Assembly: GCF_018977255.1 (NCBI RefSeq)
Contig: NW_024704771.1
Span: forward strand, 3,720,001-3,784,000
Direction of reading: 5' to 3'
From: Callorhinchus milii
Lineage: Eukaryota
DNA: 64,000 nucleotides
The notes under the pieces: generated by a model
Seen by the model: only the letters and a program-made list of their open reading frames with translations
What the model was told of the DNA's origin: nothing
Database searches by the model: none
Shown here: positions 1,042 to 63,896 of the stretch, one piece after another
Position numbering within the stretch: position 1 is the first letter of the stretch
How the letters are laid out: each line of letters starts with the position of its first letter
Made by a program: the position numbers and the translations under genes

Positions 1042-3284
1042 CCATAACTGTGATGGTCACTCTTTGTTTCACAAGAGTCTCGGACGCTTCATGTCTCACA
1101 TGACAGATGTAACTGTCACCTCCCACCACTGGAGGCGCCCTTAGGGTTAGGACATTGACAGCGCTGAAGGTCCCGTCGCTGTTCCTCACGGGATTCCCTC
1201 TCTGGATCTCCTGACCGGTCATCTCTTGCAGGGTCTCGACGGTTGAGATCTTGAACCAGAGAATGGAAATTTCTTCCGGGTAGAAACCAGAGGCCTCGCA
1301 GCGCAATGATCTCCTGAACCCGGGCTTGAGCTCCAGCAGGGGTCCAACTGGGGGAACACTGGGGGAAGCTGAACACAAGATAATGATTATTGTTAGAGGA
1401 CAATCAGATGGAATGGCTGAACAAAGCCATTCAATATAATAAATAATAAAATTCGTGACTTCAAGCCACGACTGTTTGTGGGGACGCTGCTGTGGGCAAT
1501 TTCGCCCACAAAATACACAGTCACTGCACTACAGTGTATCCTGTGAAGCGTTTTGAGACGTCTCGAAGACGTGATGAGGCGCTGTATCAAACGAGAGGAT
1601 TATTATTGTTGCGATGACTGTCAAGCTTTGGAGGGAGAGTGGACAAGAGATAGAAGTACCTGATATCCTTAAAGTGCAAGTGGCTGATCCCTCGTCGGGT
1701 GAGGCGATGACTGTACACTCGTAGTCTCCCTGATCTTCAATACCAACCTCAGGGAGGAACAGAGCTGCTTTGCCCTTTGCCAGCTCACCAGCAAACCGAG
1801 TGCCAACCCTGGACACACGAATGCCACCCTTAAAATACGAGATCACAAGCTCGTTGTTCCTCTTCCAGCTCACTAACAGGAACTGGGGTTCAACAGGTGC
1901 ATCGGGGACAAAATCGCAGTTTATGGTCACGTTCGTCCCAACGGCCGTCTTCAGCATCTGTGGACTCAGCATCACTTTCAGAGCCACTAGGAAGAGATTC
2001 ACCCGCCTCAGCGATTTCAAGTATCATCAAAAAAACAAAAGAAGCCACACTTTCTCTCTCTCTCTCTCTCTCCGAGCCAAGCTTGGTGGTCGGCAAGCGA
2101 GAGGACCCAAGGTTCAGTTCCCAGGCTGGGAGTGACCGTAGGCAAGTGTCCTCACTCCACCCCCCGCCCACCTCGGTTTGCCTCGCAGTAAGGAGGCGCC
2201 AGGCTGCTAGTCGACTTTCCAGGGGTCGTAAAGCCCTTTAAAAAAAATGTGGTCGCTCAATCCATGATTGTTTGTGGGACGCTGCTGTGCCCGAATTGGC
2301 TGCCGCGTTTCAACCACAAAATAAAATCAATTCACGTTACAGTGAATTGTGAAGCGCTTCGAGACATCCAGTAGACGTGATAAGGTGCTATACCAAATGC
2401 AAGGATTATTATTATTATTATTATATCAAATGCAAGGATTATTATTATTATTATCCCTCTCGTACACCCACCCTACCATCTCCCCCACCCCTGCATCAAG
2501 TTGCTTTTTAAATGAATCAGTGTTCTGGCTTCAATCAGCCTTCCATAAGATTGACTTCATACACAATAAATCGAACCTGCAAAGCTTTCGGAGACGCTTT
2601 GAAGTGAAAGGTAATTCGTGAAGTTGTTAGCAACACGACCTAAGGCTTGGTTTGGTTCCGAGTTACCGAGCAACCATCCTTTTCCAAACACCCAGTCTCC
2701 TGAAAGTTTATTTAACGCATTCACACTTAAAAACTAAAAAAAGTACTCACTAGGACGTCCATAATATCGGAAATTGCAAGCGAGAGGTTCGATTCACAGG
2801 CACGGGCGAAATCTTAGGCAAGTTTCCTGACTCAGAACGCCTCTGTTTCCCGAGCAGTAAATCACTCTCCGGGGTTAACAAACACTTCAAAAAAATATTA
2901 GAGTCAGGGGCGTGTCTCAAAACAAACAGGACACCTCCTAAAATAAAGAGTTACTTTACTAAATAATAGTAATAATCCTTGCATTTGCTACGGCGCCTCA
3001 TCACGTATTCACGACGTCTCAAAGCGCTTCACTGAATATACTGTAAAGTGAACTGATTGTATATTTTGTTGGTGAAATGTTGCGCACAGCGGCGTCAGTG
3101 ATTATTTAAGGAATCATTACCGCTGGAAAATATGATTTCTGGGCAAAACAGCGGCGTTCACATCCACACAACACTCACCCCATCTCCACATCCACCACAT
3201 TTCTGTTTGTCTTGTTCCTTGTCTCTTACCTGACAATAAAGCTGTCAAGAGAAGCAACAACCCCAGGGCAATAAGAGAAGCCAT
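1042..3284 (-). CDS. NCR3LG1: B7-H6 (NCR3LG1)-like Ig superfamily protein: leader + IgV + IgC1
   Basis: Three phase-1 exons with canonical AG/GT: leader 3284-3230 (MASLIALGLLLLLTALLS), IgV 1986-1660 (VTINCDF...LLVSWKR...GKAALFLPEVGIEDQGDYECTVIASPDEGSATCTLRIS), IgC1 1368-1042 (LRCEASGFYPEEISILWFK...VRNSDGTFS...YICHVRH). The C1 motif CEASGFYPE and the V end YECTVIASP resemble human B7-H6 (CESSGFYPEAINITW; YRCEVVVTP). No TM exon found in the window. Confidence 0.78.
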
Positions 3285-6198: not shown

Positions 6199-6205
6199 TA
6201 TAAAT
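6199..6205 (+). promoter_or_regulatory. TATA-like element upstream of the NCR3-like gene
   Basis: TATAAAT about 215 nt upstream of the ATG at 6418, at the edge of a CpG-rich stretch (about 6240-6470); ETS-like CTTCCG just upstream. Confidence 0.3.
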
Positions 6206-6417: not shown

Positions 6418-9400
6418 ATGAACGGCCTGATGCTGCTCGCGGCGTGCGCCTCGCTCGGTATTGCAGGTCGGTGCTTTTAGTTTGATTAAACATCACGGTA
6501 CAAGTGGGGTTTTATTTCCCACCTTCTCTCTCTCTCTCTCTCTCTCAAAGACGGCGAGTTTTATAGCACGGCACACGGTTCGAGTTCCGTAAGCGTGGTG
6601 GTCAGCGCCCTAACCCCGCAAGCGAGAGGACCCGAGCTTGATTCCCGGGCGGCTTGAAACCTTGGGCAAGTCTCCTTACTCCACACAAAGACACGCCTCT
6701 GTTCTTACGCAGCAGTAAGTAGGGACTCAGGTGTTAGTCGATTGGCGGATCGCATTCCAGAGATAATAATTCCCTTCAAAAAAAAAATGCGGTGACTTAA
6801 TCCACAACTGTTTGTGGGACGCTGCTGTGCGCCGTGTTTCGCCCCCGAGATAGTCACAACACGTTCGAGTATATCCTGTGCAAAGTGCGTGAGGTTTGAA
6901 AGCTCTTAGAGACCTCTCAACCACATAATCAGGTGCCGTATCTAACGATAATCCTTGCTTTATTGTTAGACAATAACTATTATTATTATTTTATCATCTA
7001 ACAGAACGGCAGAACAGGCTCGTGGGGCTGAATGGCCTACTCCTGTTCCCATGTTCCCCGTGTTTCGAGCTGCAGTTGTTGAGCAACCGAGAGAAAGGCT
7101 TTGTTGAGTTTCTGTGCCCGTGCGTTTGCTGTTTCAGGAAGGGCCTTCGGGCTGAAGGTTACTCAGCCCGGGCAGAGCCTGGTGTTGCTGAGAGGGGACG
7201 CAGCCATGTTGCAGTGCTTCTTTGAGTACAGCGGGGGTCAGCCTGGACTGGCGTCGACCGTGTGGTACAGGGAGACGCCAAGCAAAAGCGAAATCAGCGA
7301 GACCAATGCTCTGTACTCTGGTCGGGTGATCAAACCCACAGCTCGGGACCTGGCACACGGGAGGAACGCCTCACTGACCCTCAGTAACGTCACGGTGCAG
7401 GACACCGGCGTCTATTACTGCACCGTCAAGGTCACGATCCCGGGAGAGGGCAGAATGGAGAATGGCACAGGCAACGGAACCCACTTACTGGTGAGAGGTG
7501 AGCGAGACTTGCTGGAGAGAGCCAGAGGGATGGGTGGGGTAGGGGAGGCGGGGGGAGGGGGGGGTGGGGGGGGAGGTGAAAGCCGGGGGAATGGGACAGC
7601 AGGAGATCACAAACTGCACAGATTGTCACGCTATTAACGACGATAACAAATAATAATAATAATCCTTGCATTTGAATTCTTATCACATCGTCGAGACGTC
7701 TCAAAGCGCTTCACAGAACATAAAGTGGAATGACTGTACACTCTGTGGGTGAAACGGCGTCACACAAACGGTCGTGGATTGAGTGACCAAATTATTATTA
7801 TTATTTGAAGGGATTATTAGGCGATTACAGTAAAACTCTCATAAGTCATATCAGTTGGGACCGTACATTGAATATGACTTTCGCAGAGTATGAGTTATGC
7901 GAAACTTATCAATAATATTTTTTTATCATTATTATATTATTATAATAGGAAATTCAATGGGACTTGGGCAGATGTGCAACTTAGGCGATACGATTTATAA
8001 CAGATCAGACTTGGGGTGAGTTTATCACTTTGGCAATCACCTAAATCGTGCTGCCCGAGTCTTGTTAAAGTTCCTGGTTGTTAGTCGATTGGCTGATCGT
8101 TTTTTCCGGGCGTATTAATCTGTTCCAAAAAAATAATAATGTGGTCGCTCAATCCGTGACTGTGTGTGGATCAGTAACTGCTGTGCGCAATTGGCTGCCG
8201 CGTTTTGCACGTACAATATACAGTCAATTCACTTTACGGTGTATTCCGCGCGATTGATTAGGTAATGAATTAAGTAAGTGATTAATTGAGAAGGAAAATG
8301 GAGAAAAGAGGGATTGAGGGAGAGCGTTGGGAGAGTTCCAGGGACTGGATTTAATAATAATAATAATAATAATAATCCTTGCATTTGATATAGCGCTTTT
8401 CACGTCGGAAGGACGTCCCAAAGCGCTTCACAGAACACACTGTAAAGTGAATTGACTGTAAATTTGTGGGCGAACGCGGCAGCCAATTGCGCACAGCAAT
8501 GTCCCACAAACAGTCGTAGATTGAAAATGCCAATTTTATTATTGTTTTTGGTTTTTTGGAGGGATTATTATTAGGCTCCGTGTGGAGTAAGGAAACTTGC
8601 CCAAGGTTTCGACCTGCCTGGAATTGAACTCAGGTCTCTCGCTTGCAAAGCGAGTGCTCTAACCACTGAGCTACAGGACTCCACGATTTGGTGCCAGAGT
8701 GCAACCTTTTGCTCTTTCCTTTGGCCCAGCTCCCCCGGCCCCTCCGAGGATATCAACAGAAACCCTGGGGTCGCAGGTTGTCAGTGTGACCTGCAAGACA
8801 TCTGGCTTCCACCCCAGAAACATCAGCCTGGTGTGGCTGCTGAACAACAGGTCAGTCACTGACAGTGGGACTACTGTCCTGACACAGGAACCCGACTCGA
8901 CCTACTCAGCTTCCAGCGTGTTCAACGTCACCCAGACTGGCCTTCGCCCTGATGTAAGCCCCCAGGCCATCTTCGCCCAGTGCCAAGTTCTCCACCAGAC
9001 CTTGCAAACTCCTTTGAGAAGTGAAAGGATTCAGCTGCGAGTTGCCCAACCCAGTGAGTAAACAACATCCCTCAGTTAGTCTGTACAGGGTTGAATCCCC
9101 GCATTAACCTCTGTCCCCCACCCCATCACCCCAGCCCTCGCCAGGCTCCACTGGCTCCCTCTCATTCGTCTCATCCTGCTTGTCCCTCATCCCCTCTGTT
9201 TCCATCATCAGTGGTCCCGGGTTGTCAGTGTGACTACTCTTTCAGTCACTACTCCCCGAAATCCTGGAACAATCTTCCTCTTCCTTGCCCCCTTCCTTCT
9301 CCATCTTCAGGTTGCGCTTGAAGACCTTCCCCTTCGACTGTGCCTACGGTCACCCTCCCCTGCCCTCTGGCATCAGGCTCTGCCACTGCCCAGTGGTCTG

Positions 9401-10322
9401 GGACACTACCCCGGGTGACAGGTACTATATATGTACACATGGTCGCTGAATCCATCTGCCCTGAGCTAGACAGCTTTCATTGAACACCACTTCCTGAAAG
9501 ATCAGGTTAGCTCAGCTTACAGCAAGCGCTCTCACCACTGTGGCGAGAGGTTGCGAATGCGAGGCCCCAGGTCTGCATTTAACTCACAGCGTGGACCACA
9601 GAATGAATTGGCATTAAAAGCCGTCCTTTTGAGAGAAGAGGTTAAATGGAGGGTCTGTCTGTCTGAACCGGTTGACGTTAAATATCCTGCGATGCTATTA
9701 TTAGTAATGACAAGCCCTGCATTTGATGTAGCGCCTAAATCGCACAGTCGAGACATCTCAAAGCTCTTCACAGGATATACTGTAAAAGTGTCGTGACTGT
9801 TTATTTGTCGACAGAGGTGGCTGCCCAGCAGTGACCCACAAACGGTGATGGTGTGAGTGACCAATTTTATTTGGGGGGATTGTCAGCCAGGCCACTGAGA
9901 GAGAGAAACTCCCTTCTCTTTTCGAATAGCGCCTTAGGATCTTTGACGTCCACCTGTACAGGCAGACGGGAGCTCTGACAATGCAATAGCCCACCCCCCC
10001 CCCACCGGAGCGTCAGCTTAGACTATGGGGCTTGAACCCACAATCTTCTGACTCAGAGAGCAGAGTGCAACCGAATAACAGCATAACAGGCTGACAGAGC
10101 GAGCTGCAAAACCACGTGTTGTCTCATGGATCATCTAAATATAATGAAGACGTGTCAAAGCGAATGCAAGGATGATTATGATTATTATTTACCTAGGGAT
10201 TAATATTTTATGTGAACTCTACACAACAGGTCTGAATACTCCCCTTGTGATCGGCTTGATAAGCGTCTGTGTTCTGGCTCCGGCCCTGATTGGTATTGCT
10301 TACTATTTACTTCGAAAAGAAG
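6418..10322 (+). CDS. NCR3: NKp30 (NCR3)-like receptor: leader + VJ-type IgV + IgC1 + TM
   Basis: Phase-1 exons: leader 6418-6466 ([16 protein letters not shown]), V 7138-7497 (LKVTQP...LQCFF...TVWYRE...YSGRV...[22 protein letters not shown]...[10 protein letters not shown]; NKp30 ends GTGNGTRLVV), C1 8730-9053 ([18 protein letters not shown]...[14 protein letters not shown]), TM 10230-10322 ([27 protein letters not shown]). All boundaries are AG/GT. Confidence 0.8.
8353..8682 (-). mobile_element. Full-length tRNA-derived SINE with L2-like tail (young subfamily)
   Basis: Head GGAGTCCTGTAGCTCAGTGG...GAGTTCAATTCC (A and B boxes); tail TGTGAAGCGCTTTGGGACGTCC...AAATGCAAGG(ATT)n. Near-identical copies at 41935-42256 and 53270-53594. 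The same family is scattered throughout the window. Confidence 0.9.
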
Positions 10323-10961
10323 GTAAAACCCGTGACAAGGCAAGGTTACTGTAACCGGCAGTGAGAGAGTTACTTACACCAATGCAATATCACACTTACA
10401 CAGCGCCTTTCACGTCAAGAGGACGTCCCAAAGCGCTGGACCTGAGCCGGGGGTCAGGATCGGGATCAGGATCAGGAGTGTGTGGGTAGGAGGGTGACCG
10501 AAGGCTCGGCCGAAGAGGTTTTGAGCCACTCCTTGAAGGAGGCGAGGGAGGGAGCGAGGCAAAGGGAATGTGGGACGGAGTCCCACAGGGTGGGGGCAGA
10601 AAGGCGCATTGGTCAACGGTGGGACGGGCCGGGCAGGAGCAAGGGGCCAAGGTTCTGGACCTGCCTTGGTAAGGTGGAGTGTGCATCCCTGGACGGTGAT
10701 GCTGTCAGTACATCAGAGATGAGAGAATGCTGTGACACGGCAGAATTAATAATAATAATCTTTGCACTTAACGCAGCATCTTATTACATCGTCGAGACGT
10801 CTCAAAGCGCTTCACAGTATAGTGGAGTGACTTCATATTTTGTGAGCAAAACATAGCAGCAAAATTGCACACAGCAGCGTCCCCACAAACAGCCGTAAAG
10901 TCATCGAATAATTTAATTTGAATTTGGGGGATTTCAGACCTGGACACCGGGGGAGAGAGAG

Positions 10962-10994
<33 letters not shown>

Positions 10995-12071
10995 AACTCT
11001 TCTCTCTTTTTGAGTAGCGCTGCGGGATCTTTAACGTCCACCTGAAACAGGCAGACGGTTTAACATCGCATCCGAAGTACGAGGCGCTAAGCAACAAACC
11101 GAATCACATTGTAACGCGGTGCAATTGCTTTCACAGAGATACGCCAAGTTCCAGAGAGAAGTTCGCACACTGTAAGTAGATTTTTTTTGGGGGGGTGGGG
11201 GGGGGGGTGGCGCGTCAGGTCAAAAGCAGACTGAGATTTCCACATATGTGTGTCACCAACACGTGGAAATTTCCCTGCGTCTGGAATGCAATGCACACTC
11301 TCTCCCCATCAGCGTTGCTTAACAGTCTCCAAACCAGGCTGAGATTTCCATGCATCCCATTTCCTTGGAAATTCCAGCGATAGATTGTTGGAATGAATAC
11401 TCTCCCTGCAGATAAGTGCCCAGCTCGCCTAATTCCGGAGAGTATGAGGCACAGGGCTTTGTGGCTTGTGGTTAATGGGAACTAAATGGGAAGAATCTCT
11501 ACTCCCAATACTAAAATTAATTCTTGCATTTGATATAGCGCTTTATTGCATCTCCGAGACGACTCCAAGCACTTCACAAAACATAATCGAAAGTGAATCG
11601 ACTGTATATTTGGTGGGCGCAATGCGGCAGCAAATTGCGCCCAGCGGCGTCCCACAAACAGTCGTGGATTGAATGACCCATTTATTTTATTTTTTTGGAA
11701 GGAATTATTACCCCGCGGAAAGCCATCCGCTAATTGACGAGCAACCAGGTTCCTACTTATCGCTAGGCAAACGGAAGCGTGCGGGTAAGGAAACTTGCCC
11801 AACCTTTTGCCCTGCCGGGAATCGAACCCAGGTCTCTTGCTTGCGAGGCGAGCGCCCTAACCACTGAGTTACAGGACTCCAAGCAACAATTACACAGAGC
11901 CTTTCACGTTGGGAGGACATCCCAAGGCGCTGGACAGGTAAGGAATCGCACCTGATCTGGGGATGACAATTTTTTTGTTAATTTTTCCGAAGGTGGACTG
12001 GACGGACACAATAAACCCAATCTACGCCACAATCAAATTCTCAGATTGAAACAGAAAAGACGTTCCCACAG

Positions 12072-14897: not shown

Positions 14898-15805
14898 TTA
14901 TTTCTGGAGCGTGCCGACAGGTTTCTTTCTGAGCTGCCAGAGGTGGCCCTGGATTGTCAGGGCGTCCACGTTGGCAGACATTGTCTTGGAGGGGATGGGT
15001 TGGAACTGTTTGCGATCGGAGTTGTACTTGTACAGGTTCTCGATCATTTTCTTCTGGATGCTGCGTGGCCCTGAGCCGGCCAGTTTGTGGATCTCCTCCA
15101 TCTCGGGGCAATAGGAATAGAGGGCCCGGAACTGGCACTGGTGGTCACGGAACAGAATCACGCACTGGTTCAGCCCACACTTCTCCAGCTCCTGTAACAC
15201 CAACACACGATCAGATCAACGCCAACGCACAATCAGAGTAACACCAACACACAATCAGAGTAACACCAACACACAATCAGAGTAACACCAACACACAATC
15301 AGAGTAACACCAACACACAATCAACACCAACACACAATCAGATCAACACCAACACACAATCAGAGTAACACCAACACACAATCAGAGTAACACCAACACA
15401 CAATCAGCTCAATACTAACACCAACATACAATCAACTAACTCATCAACAACAACTCACTCACTCACTCACTCACTCACTCACTTACTCACTCACTCAACA
15501 GCTTACATTTACGCAGCACCTATCCCGTTGGGAGGACGTCTCAAAGCGCTTCACAGGGTTTGCTGTAAAGGGTTTTGTAGGCGAACGAGACAGCCACCAA
15601 GTGCACGAACAGCAGATCGTGTTCACGAGCTACACCTGAGGCAGAGCGGCAGCGGAGACTGTTTTGCTCAACCGAGTGTCTTGACACCCGCGGAAACTCA
15701 TCACCGTCACTTAAGAGTCTCCAAACCCCAACTGAGAATTCCAGGCATCCCACCTACACATGGACATCCCGGAGAGAGATTGTAGGAACAGAATGCGCTC
15801 CCCCC

Positions 15806-20500: not shown

Positions 20501-23500
20501 ATTCCAGAGGTTGGGGGCAGAGTGACTGAAGGCTCTCCCGCCAATGGTGGGGCGGGTGGGTCGGGGGACGAGGAGCAATGTTACGGAGGTGAGGGAAGGC
20601 AGAGCGGGTCATGGCTTGGATGTGGGTGCTTGGATCATTCAGAACTCATTCAGAACTCTGCAGCTCGTGTACTGTCCCGCACTAGGCTTCGCGACCACAT
20701 CACTCCCACCCTCGCTCCCCTCCACTGGCTCCCCATCCCCCAGAGGATTGATTTCAAGATCCTCATCCTCACCTACAAGGCCATTCACGGCCTCGCTCCC
20801 TCCTACCTCTCCAACCTACTATCCCCCTACCTACCTGCCCGTACCCTCCATTCCTCCGGCTCCGGTCTGCTCCACGTCCCCCGCCCCAACCGCCCTACCA
20901 TCGGTGGCCGGGCCTTCAGCCTCTCAGCCCCGAGGCTCTGGAACTCCATCCCCCAGTGCCTTCGCCGCTTCCTCCCTTTCCTCCTTCAAGGCCGGTCTCA
21001 AGACCTTTCTCTTTGACCGAGCATTCAGGTCCCCTCTCGACTCTTCCCCCTTCTCGCTCCCTCCCTCCCCTCCCCTCACCCTGACCATTTCCCCCCTCCT
21101 CGCTCCCTCCCTTCCCTCCCCTCACCCTGACCATTTCCCCCCTCCTCGCTCCCTCCCTTCCCTCCCCTCACCCTGACCATTTCCCCCCTCCTCGCTCCCT
21201 CCCTTCCCTCCCCTCACCCTGACCATTTCCCCCCACTGCTCGGGTCATGACCCAACTGTGCAGCGCCTCGGGACGTCCTCCTGACGTGAAAGGCGCTTTA
21301 TAAATGGAATCTTGTTGTTGTTGTTGTTGTTGTGGGGGAGAAAAGACAGTTGAGGATCGAACAAGACACCCGGGTTCCTGATGGCTGGTGAGTTGTGGTG
21401 AGCAACCATGGAGGGTGACGCTGCCAGAGCCTGAGGTGCTGAGGCACTGGCGTGAGCCGATCGGGAGGGCCTCAGTCTTGTTCACGTTCAACTGTAGGAA
21501 ATTTGCCCTCATCCAGGACTTGATGTCCCACCGCAGTCTGTCAGGACAGCAGTGCTCCTGGAGTTGAGGGTGGAGGCAGAACGATAGAGTTGGGTGTCAT
21601 CCGCATACGTGTGGAAGTTGACCCCATGTCTGCGGGTGATGTCAATGGGGAGGCTGTAGACATCAAAGAGGAGAGGGCCAAGGACAGAGCCCTGGGGGAC
21701 GCCAGACATGACAGTGCGGGGGCTGGAGGAGAAACCGTTAGAGGCAATGGAGGGGATGGGGGGGGGGGGGAGGACTCACCGAGCCTGTTCCCGCTGGCGT
21801 TCCTGGTCGCTCTCTTGCTGTTCCCGCCGGAGCCTGGCCCCCTCGCTCCGCTGCTGCTGCTTGAGGATGAAGAGCGCTCGTCTGTGTGCTACCGTGTCCT
21901 GGCGACAGAGGCAGCAATGGTTACAGCACCTGCCCACCACCCCCCCCCCCCCACCCCACAACCCCATCACACAGGCCCTCTCCACCCCCAACCCCCTACG
22001 TCACACAGGCCCTGCGCCCCCACCCTCATTCCTGTCCCCGCTCCCCAACTCTCTGTCATTCCCGGCTCAAGCCATTCACCCAACGCACACTCCCCCCCCC
22101 AAAGCCTTGGCCCTTGCCAACCTGTGCCTAATACTGTCCGGAATTAGGGGTAAGCAGGGCGCGTCCCTCCAGGGGGGGAGAGAGAGAGAGAGAGAGAGAG
22201 AGGGAGACAATCTAGCGCTGGGATTTCCGGGTGTGGGTGGGATCCATGGAATTCTCAGCTCGGTTTGGAGACCCTTAAGCGACGGTGTCGGGGTCCGGTG
22301 CGCGTCAGACACCCGGCTGACCCCGAACACGTTTCAAAGCGCTTCGCGGGCTGCACTGTAAAGTGGAGTGACTGTACGTCTTGTGGGGGAAAGGGGCCCA
22401 ATTGCGCACAGCAAACAGTCGTGGATTGAGTGACCAATTTTTTTGGGGGGAAGGGGTTAGTAACCCCAGAAAGCGATCTGTCAATCGACTAACAACCGTG
22501 TTCCCATTTACCGCTGTGCGTGTGCGGGTGTGTGGGTGTGTGTGTGTGTGGTGTTTGTGGTGTCTATGTGGTGTGTGTGTGATGTGTGTCTGTTGGGTGT
22601 GTGTAGTGTTTGTGGTGTGTGTGTTATGGTGTGTGTGTGTGTGTGTGTGTGCACACGCGTGTGTGGTGTGTGCCTGTGGTGTGTATGGTGTGTGCATGGT
22701 GTGTTTGTGGTGTGTGTGATGTGTGTGTGTGCNNNNNNNNNNNNNNNNNNNNNNNNNNNNNNNNNNNNNNNNNNNNNNNNNNNNNNNNNNNNNNNNNNNN
22801 NNNNNNNNNNNNNNNNNNNNNNNNNNNNNNNNNNNNNNNNNNNNNNNNNNNNNNNNNNNNNNNNNNNNNNNNNNNNNNNNNNNNNNNNNNNNNNNNNNNN
22901 NNNNNNNNNNNNNNNNNNNNNNNNNNNNGTGTCGAGTGCTCGAATCACTGCGCCACAGGACTCCACAGAGTCAGGTGGTCCGAGTTTGGACGGTCTCTCA
23001 CCGCGGCTGCGCTTGGTGTTGGTTTGGGGGTCTCCCGTCCCCCGGGGTCTGGTCGGAGCTCGGGGGACCCCCGGCTCAGCCCCTCCAGCTCCGACTGCAC
23101 CACATTCAGGCTCCGGTTCAACTCCTCCAAACCGGCCCCCTCCCCCGCTTCGGGGTCGCCCCGGGCCTCGCTCCGCAGCCCCCACTCCGGCCACACCCGG
23201 TGCCCGTTTGCGGGGGGCTCGCCGGGAACCTCCCTGTCCTCCCGGCCCCCCTCCGCAGCCCCAGCCAGCAGAGCAAACGCCTCCTGCCCCAGCCTCTGCC
23301 TGTGGCTGGCGGCCATTTCCTCCACGGCCCGGATCTGAGCCAGGATCTCCCTGCGCTTGGCCTCCAGCCGCCTGCGGAGCCCCGTCTGCTCCTCCGTCTC
23401 CCCGGGGCCCGGCTCCTCCGCTCCCGCCGGGGCCCCCAGCGCTGGGGCAGGGCAGGGGTGCCGTTTGCCCCGCCCCTTCCGGAACCTTCTCTCGGCGAAG

Positions 23501-41424: not shown

Positions 41425-50461
<9,037 letters not shown>

Positions 50462-56438: not shown

Positions 56439-57074
56439 AAAGGCAAAGAGAGAGAGAGAGAGAGAGGTGTGAGAGAGAGAAGGCAGAGAGAAAGGGGGAA
56501 GAACGAGTGTGGATGTGTGAGAGAGAAAGAGAGTGGTGTGGGATAGGCAGAGAGAGAGAGTGAGAGAGAGGGGGTTGGTGGAGAGACACAGAGAGAGGGG
56601 GAAAGAGAGAGAGAGAGAGAGAGAGTGGGAAGGGCAGAGAGAGAGGAGACAGAGAGAAAGGGGGAAGAACGAGTGTGGATGTGTGAGAGAGAAAGAGAGT
56701 NNNNNNNNNNNNNNNNNNNNNNNNNNNNNNNNNNNNNNNNNNNNNNNNNNNNNNNNNNNNNNNNNNNNNNNNNNNNNNNNNNNNNNNNNNNNNNNNNNNN
56801 NNNNNNNNNNNNNNNNNNNNNNNNNNNNNNNNNNNNNTGCAAATTGTGCTGCATTGGTCAGGACTGAGTGAGTTGTCTGGGAATCCGAGGGGTTGAGGGG
56901 ATGGAGAGAGAGAGAGTCATTGGCTCTGGAGACCAAACCCCCGTTGGGTTGGGGTTTGGATCAGTTCTTTGCTGAGAGGGGACGAGGAGAGCAGAGACTG
57001 ATGTGCTGATCTGTTTGTGAGTATATCGCTGTTTCCTGTCACGTATCTGCCTTCTGCATATGTATTTATATTTC

Positions 57075-57111
<37 letters not shown>

Positions 57112-58654
57112 GGGGTATTTGTGTGTTTCACCCCCAAAGGAACTGTGTACAGTACCACCGGGTCTGCATTTACACTGCGATGTACCATTGCACACACACA
57201 CACACACACACACCAGGGATGGGATTGCTTTAAACCTCTGTGTGTGTGGGGGGTGGGNNNNNNNNNNNNNNNNNNNNNNNNNNNNNNNNNNNNNNNNNNN
57301 NNNNNNNNNNNNNNNNNNNNNNNNNNNNNNNNNNNNNNNNNNNNNNNNNNNNNNNNNNNNNNNNNNNNNNNNNNNNNNNNNNNNNNNNNNNNNNNNNNNN
57401 NNGGTGGGGGGGTTGGGGGTGTATGTGTGTGTGGGGGGGTGGGGGGTGTATGTGTGTGTGTGGGGGGGGTGTGTGTGTGTGTGTGGGGGGGGTGTGTGGG
57501 GGGGGGTGTGTGGGGGGTGGGGGGTGTATGTGTGTGGGGGGGGGGTGTGTGTGGGTGTGGGGGGTGTATGTGTGTGTGCGTGTGTGGGGGTGGGGGGTGT
57601 ATGTGTGTGCGTGTGGGGGGGGTGTGGGGGGTGTATGTGTGTGTGTGTGTGGGGGTGGGGGGTTTATGTGTGTGGGGGTGGGGGGGGGTGTGGGGGGTGG
57701 GGGGTGTATGTGTGTGTGGGTGGGGGGGGGTGTATGGTGTGTATGTGGGGGGTTGGGGGTGTATGGGGGTGTGGGGGTTGGGGGGTGTATGTGTGTGTGG
57801 GGGGTGGGGGGTGTATGTGTGGGGGGGGGGGTGGGGGGTGGGGGGTGTATGTTGTGTGGGGGGGGGGTGTATGTGTGGGGGGGGGTGTATGTGTGGTGTG
57901 GGGGGGTGTGGGGGGTTGGGGGGTTGTTCAGCATCACTGCGATCTCTGCTATTGCGCTTCCGCACTGTATATTTCACCCCACACCCCCTCTCTGATGCTC
58001 TCCATCTCTCTCTCTCATTTGCCTTGTGTCACCTGCACTCTCCCCCCTCCCCCCTCTCTCTCCCCCTCCCCTCTCTCCCCCATCCCCCCTCTCTCTCCCC
58101 CCTCCCCCCTCTCTCTCCCCCCCCCCCTCTCTCTCCCTCCTCCCCCCCTCTCTCTCCCCTCCCCCCCCTCTCTCTCCCCCTCCCCCTCTCTCTCTCCCTC
58201 CCCCCCTCTCTCTCCCTCCCCCACTCTCTCTCCCTTCTCCCCTCTCACTCCCTCCCCCCCTCTCTCTCCCTCCCCCCTCTCTCTGTACCACCCCCCCTCT
58301 CTCTCTACCCCCCCTCTCTCTCTACCCCCCACTCTCTCTCCCCCTCCCTCCCCCCCCCCCTCTCTCTCTCTCCCTCTCATTTGCCTTGTGTCACCTGCAC
58401 TNNNNNNNNNNNNNNNNNNNNNNNNNNNNNNNNNNNNNNNNNNNNNNNNNNNNNNNNNNNNNNNNNNNNNNNNNNNNNNNNNNNNNNNNNNNNNNNNNNN
58501 NNNNNNNNNNNNNNNNNNNNNNNNNNNNNNNNNNNNNNNNNNNNNNNNNNNNNNNNNNNNTTATTGATTTGCTTTGGTTGATCAATTGCTGAAAGCATCG
58601 CAAAATGGTGGGGATCTCTATTGGGGGTGACCTGGTTTGAAGGAGGTGTTGACG

Positions 58655-62675: not shown

Positions 62676-62799
62676 GTATTCGTCAATTGATTTTTTTGTT
62701 CATTCTTTTATCGTTTAGGATGTTGGAAAGCCCAGATATAACACAGAAGCCCTGACCCAGTTTACTGTGCAAATTTCTGCCCTGTTCATCAAAATCTCT

Positions 62800-63896
62800 A
62801 TGGAGATGCTACGTCGCTTCAATAAATGCCGGCTGATTGGCTTTCTGCGGAAACCTCGGTTGGGTGTGGGTTTGTTGCTCGTGTTGATGCTCACGGGCAT
62901 TCCTTTCCTGGTGGATTACGCCCAGGAATGGACCCTGCGGAGAGACCCAACGCCCATCACCAATGGCAGTATCGTGCAGATGCGGGCGAGGGCCGTGAGC
63001 TTCAACATGGAGGTCTTCAGACACAACGCTTCCAAATATTACCTCATTCCCAACACAAACGCCTGTGACGGTCCCGACGTCTTCCTGGTCAGCTTTGTCA
63101 TCAGTAAAACGGGCCACTTCCAAAGCCGGGAGGCCATCCGCCAGAGCTGGGCGAGCGTCAAGGACGTTCAAGGACACACAGTGTTAATACTCTTCGCTTT
63201 GGGGGTCCCCGAGAGCACAGAAGAACAGGAGAGAATCGAGGAAGAATCATCTCAATACAAGGACGTGGTTCAAGGGGTCTTTAGGGATACTTACCACAAC
63301 CTGACCCTGAAGACCATCATGATAATGCAATGGTTGGCACTTATTGCCCGGCTGCCAGATACCTCCTCAAAGTCGACGACGATGTCTTTCTGAACTATCA
63401 CAACCTAATGGAGCATCTCATAGGCCTCAGCGACGATTCCGAGGACCTGTATCTGGGTTGGGTCCATCGTAGGGTCAGACCCGTTCGAAACAAGAACGAC
63501 CTGTACTACGTCTCGGAGTCCGTGTACTCGAAGGACGTCTACCCGGACTACTGCAGTGGGACGTCTTATGTTGTGTCCAAGGATGTTGTCCTCAAGGTCT
63601 ACGTGGCAGCATTGACCACTCCGCTGATAACCATCGAAGATGTCTTTGTGGGGTTGTGTGCTCATAAGATGGGGGTTTCACCCACTCACACCTCTAAGAT
63701 ATCTGGGCCAGTTCGATTTCACTTAAACCAATGTTGCTACAAGTCTATATACGCTTCCCATCACATCAAGCCGGGAGAGTTCCTGAAGATATGGAAGCTT
63801 GTGAATGACGGGAGCAGATGCTCGTTGCTCGCTAAGTACACTGGGCTGTTCATGTGCAAAGCCCTCGCCTTGTTGAGTCCAGTTATTAATCAATGA
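62800..63896 (+). CDS. B3GALT4: Beta-1,3-galactosyltransferase 4 (GT31), single coding exon, 1-nt frameshift near 63338
   Basis: Two overlapping ORFs join into about 365 aa: type II TM (LGVGLLLVLMLTGIPFLV), LIPNTNAC, REAIRQSW, FRDTYHNLTLKT, YCPAARYLLKVDDDVF (DxD), YPDYCSGTSY, IEDVFVG and a B3GALT4-like C-terminus (CCY...SHH...WKLV...GLFMCKALALL). Close to PFDN6, as in the human extended class II region. Confidence 0.88.

Follow-up and report, generated by a model that had tools for sequence, protein, structure and literature searches.

An elephant-shark (Callorhinchus milii) NKp30-like gene with a germline VJ domain and a predicted C1-set domain

The gene in this study was identified on the forward strand of a 64,000-nucleotide stretch of genomic DNA from Callorhinchus milii, the elephant shark (assembly GCF_018977255.1, contig NW_024704771.1, positions 3,720,001 to 3,784,000), hereafter the window, and all coordinates are counted from its first letter. 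The gene resembles that of natural cytotoxicity triggering receptor 3 (NCR3), or NKp30. The best explanation of its features, which is held here with moderate confidence, is that it is an intact member of the NCR3 family, linked to the major histocompatibility complex (MHC), in which a germline VJ domain is carried on a C1-set domain instead of a bare stalk. Four joined exons form an open frame of 275 codons, and the product is predicted to be a membrane glycoprotein of type I whose ectodomain contains seven N-glycosylation sequons.

All introns of the gene are in phase 1, as is usual for genes of the immunoglobulin superfamily, and the exon borders follow the GT/AG rule. Exon 1 (6418–6466, 49 bp) encodes the leader, with the start codon and signal peptide, and ends in phase 1 at the donor CAG/GTCGGT; the junction between leader and V exon is also present in a public partial protein model. 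Exon 2 (7138–7497, 360 bp; acceptor tgtttcag, donor GAG/GTGAGC) encodes the germline VJ domain, of the V-set. Exon 3 (8730–9053, 324 bp; acceptor cctttggcccag, donor CCA/GTGAGT; phase 1-1) encodes a C1-set Ig domain, and is the single C1 exon of the gene, as tblastn of the product revealed no second one. Exon 4 (10230–10322, 93 bp; acceptor acaacag, donor AAG/GTAAAA) encodes a short connecting piece, the transmembrane (TM) helix and the stop-transfer sequence RKE. Its start is ambiguous, since an in-phase alternative acceptor at 10197 would add residues that include one cysteine. A candidate TATA box (TATAAA, 6199–6204, forward strand), identified by pattern match only, is situated ∼215 bp upstream of the start codon, within a 3.1-kb interval common to this gene and a divergent B7-family gene. 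A dispersed repeat (AATAATAATAATCCTTGCATTTGA…GTCGAGACGTCTCAAAGCGCTTCACAG) occurs in either orientation, both within the introns and throughout the window (7650–7760, 8350–8470, 9700–9800, 10740–10800 and elsewhere), and a tRNA-like short interspersed element is present at 8570–8690, just upstream of the C1 acceptor.

The V domain is of NKp30 type, as evidenced through both sequence and predicted fold. The exon extends unbroken from strand A past YYCTVKV to a J-like G strand, and both canonical cysteines and the tryptophan are present. Because the exon continues uninterrupted through the J-like strand, the V and J portions are germline-joined; no heptamer of a recombination signal sequence (RSS) was found inside or beside the exon, and there are no separate RSS-flanked V and J segments of the type seen in T-cell receptor (TCR) or immunoglobulin (Ig) genes. 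The Pfam V-set score (2.4e-10) is above the curated cut-off. Among single domains of solved structures in the PDB, human NKp30 gives the highest sequence score (44.4 bits, E 1.7e-10), compared to 35 bits for the V domain of SIRP-alpha, and the motif GTGNGTxLxV is common to the elephant-shark V and human NKp30. The V domain of UrIg2 is outside the 60 best sequence matches. An AlphaFold2 (AF2) model for which 25 related V domains were used reached a predicted local distance difference test score (pLDDT) of 92.4, and when this model was searched with Foldseek, chains of NKp30 occupied the top four places (TM-score 0.81, root-mean-square deviation (rmsd) 2.6, 32% identity), with ∼35 SIRP V chains ranking next (TM-score ∼0.70, rmsd 4.7). 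A search of the ESM Atlas returned generic V-set and C1-set clusters only. The AF2 model of the V also contains a short helix at residues 68–74, at the site of helix alpha2 of NKp30, which belongs to the surface in contact with B7-H6 (PMC3135353).

That exon 3 encodes a true C1-set fold can be stated with confidence, as Pfam, PDB and AF2 all agree. The Pfam C1-set score of 5.6e-11 is above the curated cut-off, and the AF2 model has a pLDDT of 85.2. The structural neighbours returned by Foldseek are generic for the C1-set, and include UrIg2, the constant domain of IgNAR, MHC class II beta2, and light-chain and TCR constant domains. By sequence, the best single-domain match is domain 2 of SIRP-alpha (33.2 bits), followed by the Ig kappa constant domain (30 bits) and a C1 domain of UrIg2 (22 bits). 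The exon includes YSASSVFNV, and its segment after strand F (TLQ..PLR) pairs with CEVAHVTLQGDPLR in the alignment to SIRP-alpha domain 2. Recent exon shuffling of the C1 domain from the adjoining B7-family gene was considered and rejected, as the two share 24% identity with a tblastn E value of 0.011.

These results agree with much of the original prediction, which was made from the letters of the DNA alone. It had proposed one uninterrupted exon for V and the J-like G strand, and 7138–7497 is indeed continuous and devoid of an RSS heptamer; it had assigned the V to the NKp30 type, which is what both the PDB sequence comparison and Foldseek returned. Its C1-set exon following V is borne out by the Pfam and AF2 scores, and the resemblance it saw between the end of this domain and the C1 of SIRP is matched by the alignment with SIRP-alpha domain 2.

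Relatives of the V domain were sought by HMMER against 1.84 billion representative proteins. This search gave 408 hits, the best 150 of which (down to ∼E 7e-7) were re-scored per domain, and the statements on relatives made here apply to these 150. The closest V domain is that of a 289-aa protein of a lungfish (63.5 bits), followed by amphibian V domains, several of which are named NCR3-like (48–62 bits), and the V domains of newt and horn-shark "NCR3-like" proteins (54 bits); mammalian SIRP V domains scored 23–32 bits. The lungfish protein is also the only one of the 150 with the V-C1-TM layout, and in none of the others is an NCR3-like V immediately followed by a C1 domain. It is represented by two entries from Protopterus annectens, XP_043926868 and XP_043926867 (289 and 292 aa), and has the same order of leader, VJ, C1 and TM as the elephant-shark gene. 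The alignment between the two spans both domains, with 35% identity in V and 26% in C1, and both C1 domains have the same CxxxHxTLxxxLxS ending. The lungfish protein differs in its J motif (GVGPGETLIV), in having an arginine at the outer edge of the TM (DWVRIGLF) and in a tail of 12 residues, the latter two features giving it the look of an activating form. As the nearest relative of the elephant-shark gene has it too, the V-C1-TM layout is probably old and not an accident specific to chimaeras.

Several observations weigh against an assignment of the gene to the NCR3 family with a C1 domain in its product. In a maximum-likelihood tree of 44 V domains, with no mammalian NKp30 sequence included, the elephant-shark V falls in an unresolved polytomy of NCR3-like sequences, and its pairing with the lungfish V is weak (85/0, no support from the Shimodaira-Hasegawa approximate likelihood-ratio test). 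The C1 domain has SIRP-alpha as its best match, and the whole lungfish protein best matches domains 1–2 of SIRP-alpha (8.5e-24). The annotated shark NCR3-like proteins that were examined are V-stalk-TM or V-V-TM, with no C1, and since every intron of the gene is in phase 1, skipping of the C1 exon would also be in frame. Of the 11 residues of NKp30 that contact B7-H6, only two are identical in the elephant-shark V (our own mapping of the PDB alignment onto Table II of PMC3135353), with about five others conservatively replaced in the NKp30 alignment; this pattern is compatible with a receptor and ligand that co-evolve, but it proves nothing. Finally, the white-shark order AIF1-NCR3-DDAH2 is not found in the 64-kb window, in which neither AIF1 nor DDAH2 is present.

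The alternative that best survives, although we consider it unlikely, is that the gene encodes an MHC-resident, SIRP-like VJ-C1 receptor that is not an orthologue of NKp30, with the NKp30-like character of the V reflecting the shared ancestry of all VJ domains. SIRP-alpha, -beta and -gamma likewise have a VJ-type V followed by C1-set domains, the C1 domain of the elephant-shark gene matches domain 2 of SIRP-alpha best, including the TLQ..PLR segment after strand F, and SIRP V domains come next after NKp30 by fold. In addition, the lungfish relative, which carries the NCBI name SIRP-alpha-like, matches SIRP-alpha domains 1–2 contiguously. The V domain, on the other hand, scores higher with NKp30 (44 bits) than with SIRP V (35 bits), and mammalian SIRP V domains reach only 23–32 bits in the re-scoring; even the lungfish V, when taken alone, scores 35 bits with NKp30 and 31 bits with SIRP. 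In the tree, mammalian SIRP V domains form a clade (100/99) that leaves the elephant-shark V outside. SIRPs also differ in possessing two C1 domains and an ITIM (immunoreceptor tyrosine-based inhibitory motif) tail or a lysine in the TM, whereas the elephant-shark gene has one C1 exon instead of two and an uncharged TM, and no tail exon with four tyrosines or ITIMs was found downstream as far as 14900. The gene also adjoins a B7-family gene in a block of MHC type. Human SIRP genes, by comparison, are located outside the MHC.

Less probable again is that the C1 exon is skipped in the mature mRNA, or is a decaying relic, so that the product would be a conventional NKp30 with V, stalk and TM. The exon is symmetrical (phase 1-1), and its skipping would preserve the frame; a short stalk could then come from the alternative acceptor at 10197. 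The public models appear to favour this as well. Two public proteins, of 150 and 172 aa, share the V exon with full identity, and the C1 and TM exons are absent from both, while the annotated NCR3-like proteins of sharks are all V-only or V-V. The 150-aa UniParc entry, however, runs on from the V exon into the intron, and the 172-aa UniProt entry A0A4W3GK94, which is named "Natural cytotoxicity triggering receptor 3" in Callorhinchus milii, was rejected as evidence on the gene, as its C-terminus corresponds to no exon here but to dispersed repeats, located at 20.8 kb and 28.9 kb. Both models read through the V donor into a G-rich run (GGGGAGGCGGGGGGAGGGGGGGGTGGGGGGGG) directly after the V exon (7497–7640), a probable cause of the truncated annotations. 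As they stand, these public models are artefacts, truncated and reading into intron or repeat, and are no evidence for skipping. No fuller public model came from a word-indexed search with the V exon or from a V-C1 profile run twice against a 5.8-billion-protein collection (the second time at E 10); these searches retrieved nothing but the 150-aa fragment and the lungfish protein.

The C1 exon itself does not have the appearance of a relic. It is intact across 107 codons, its acceptor tract is strong and its donor has the consensus GTGAGT, it retains every hallmark of the C1-set and exceeds the Pfam cut-off twofold, and its product folds at a pLDDT of 85 in AF2. Were it skipped and the acceptor at 10230 used, the V domain would be placed merely ∼five residues from the membrane. 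We infer from the genomic sequence that the C1 exon would be present in the main transcript of the gene.

The hydrophobic run of the TM contains no arginine, lysine, aspartate or glutamate, and its Kyte-Doolittle mean is up to 2.66, which upholds the uncharged TM of the original prediction. Mammalian NKp30 is V-only, and an arginine in its TM couples it to CD3-zeta or FcR-gamma (PMC6514059), from which the elephant-shark gene departs, as had been proposed, in both its added C1 domain and its TM. As the TM lacks this arginine, signalling cannot run through CD3-zeta or FcR-gamma in the mammalian way. The suggestion of an adaptor-independent receptor is reasonable in this mammalian sense, and signalling would have to depend on a tail or on a partner chain. 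The suggestion that the receptor may be inhibitory finds no support, with neither an ITIM nor an immunoreceptor tyrosine-based switch motif (ITSM) in downstream frames of compatible phase, and no homology to known tails. No ITIM or ITSM exon was found in phase-1 open reading frames (ORFs) after any AG acceptor between 10330 and 14900, up to a CAMSAP-like gene on the reverse strand (first ORF 14901–15215) that bounds the room for tail exons of the receptor, and tblastn of 159 retrieved proteins against 9–15 kb gave nothing convincing. If the donor of exon 4 is not used, read-through would add a tail at 10323–10354 (forward strand, stop codon at 10352–10354), which belongs to the ORF at 10172–10354.

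That the entire gene is a pseudogene, recently dead and without a complete 3′ end, is very improbable: there is no convincing tail exon and no polyadenylation signal nearby (the first AATAAA, at 12010, is 1.66 kb beyond the read-through stop), but the four open exons, canonical splice sites, signal peptide and TATA-like element speak against it, and the 13-residue read-through tail would suffice for a complete type I protein.

If the product is an NCR3-family receptor with a C1 domain, its V domain would bind a B7-H6-like ligand through the face used by human NKp30, and the simplest candidate for this ligand is the product of the adjoining B7-family gene. The C1 domain may act as a spacer that holds the V off the membrane, and possibly as a pairing module for another C1-bearing chain.

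The B7-family gene is on the reverse strand, head-to-head with the receptor gene (start codon at 3284; V exon 1658–1981; C1-set exon 1040–1366), and the start codons of the two are 3.1 kb apart. In the PDB its V is matched best by B7-H3 and PD-L1, and B7-H6 is another of the matches. At the other end of the window are long B3GALT4-like ORFs (62719–63893, forward strand) that resemble a beta-1,3-galactosyltransferase, which serves as a marker for the MHC's extended class II end. In the white shark, B3GALT4 is located on the MHC chromosome, as is a cluster of NCR3 genes, which is found between AIF1 and DDAH2 (PMC10751288 supplement). Based on the B3GALT4-like ORFs and on this joint location in the white shark, the receptor gene is MHC-linked.

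Elsewhere in the window, two ORFs on the reverse strand (44165–44527 and 47941–48318) look like exons of RPL7A (ribosomal protein L7a), as judged from their translations; human RPL7A is located in the MHC-paralogous region at 9q34. Long stretches of low complexity are present at 37.7–39.1 kb, 50–52 kb and 58.8–60.7 kb, encoding Ser/Leu/Pro or His/Thr/Pro repeats in several frames and possessing strong GC and AT skew. The window contains four gaps of N (22733–22928, 56701–56837, 57258–57402 and 58402–58560).

The elephant-shark gene has in common with mammalian NKp30 a single-exon VJ-type V, the GTGNGTxLxV motif and MHC linkage, with a member of the B7 family as the likely ligand in both; it differs by the extra C1-set domain and the uncharged TM, and does not have an ectodomain of V plus stalk only. 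With the NCR3 genes of elasmobranchs (nurse shark MT914154-914161, and NCR3-like genes of horn, white and bamboo shark) it shares an MHC-linked, non-rearranging VJ, and the V of the horn-shark NCR3-like protein, at 36% identity, is the most similar to the elephant-shark V in the tree. The tail of horn-shark NCR3-like XP_067865381 contains two motifs of ITIM form (VQYSAL and VQYCTL), suggesting that at least some members of the shark NCR3 family look inhibitory, unlike mammalian NKp30.

Similarity also extends to UrIg and UrIg2, which have a germline VJ followed by C1-set domains, with the UrIg gene located in the MHC class III region. UrIg, however, is a secreted molecule composed of a V and three C domains, the C domains of UrIg2 number nine, and both have a V that is nearer to those of Ig and TCR than to the V of NCR3 (PMC12227049). 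With its single C1 exon and its NKp30-type V, the elephant-shark gene has neither the at least three C domains nor the V nearest to Ig and TCR that characterize UrIg.

That the MHC and its paralogues contain VJ-C1 genes that do not rearrange is established through UrIg, UrIg2 and tetrapod genes (PMC10751288; PMC12227049), and NCR3 is treated as a VJ-domain gene in the same two papers; the original prediction had noted that germline VJ-C1 genes are described from some non-mammalian vertebrates. A search that did not extend to the primary papers on shark NCR3 found no account of an NKp30-type V with a C1 domain attached, and an earlier description is therefore possible. The term "primordial-type", which had been applied to this molecule, rests on one other species, the lungfish, and on a tree in which the V domains concerned are not resolved.

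It is only tentatively that the chimaera gene and its lungfish relative can be proposed to preserve the original form of NKp30, a germline VJ-C1-TM chain encoded in the MHC beside a B7 ligand; NKp30 would then have begun as an antigen-receptor-like molecule, with loss of the C1 domain following later in elasmobranchs and in tetrapods. Authors often cite NKp30 as an MHC-encoded, non-rearranging VJ gene and so as related to the gene whose splitting by the RAG transposon led to antibodies and T-cell receptors; the accounts consulted regard it as V-only. VJ, C1 and TM, as seen in the slowly evolving chimaera and in the lungfish, amount to the complete order of domains found in an antigen-receptor chain. 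The head-to-head arrangement of the receptor and B7-family genes makes the idea of a co-inherited receptor-ligand pair directly testable, and interest in the gene would grow with the inclusion of C1 in transcripts and with the same exon in other cartilaginous fishes. A C1-bearing form of NKp30 would link NKp30 to VJ-C1 genes of the SIRP and UrIg types and, if the proposed history is true, NKp30 and SIRP would descend from one VJ-C1 ancestor.

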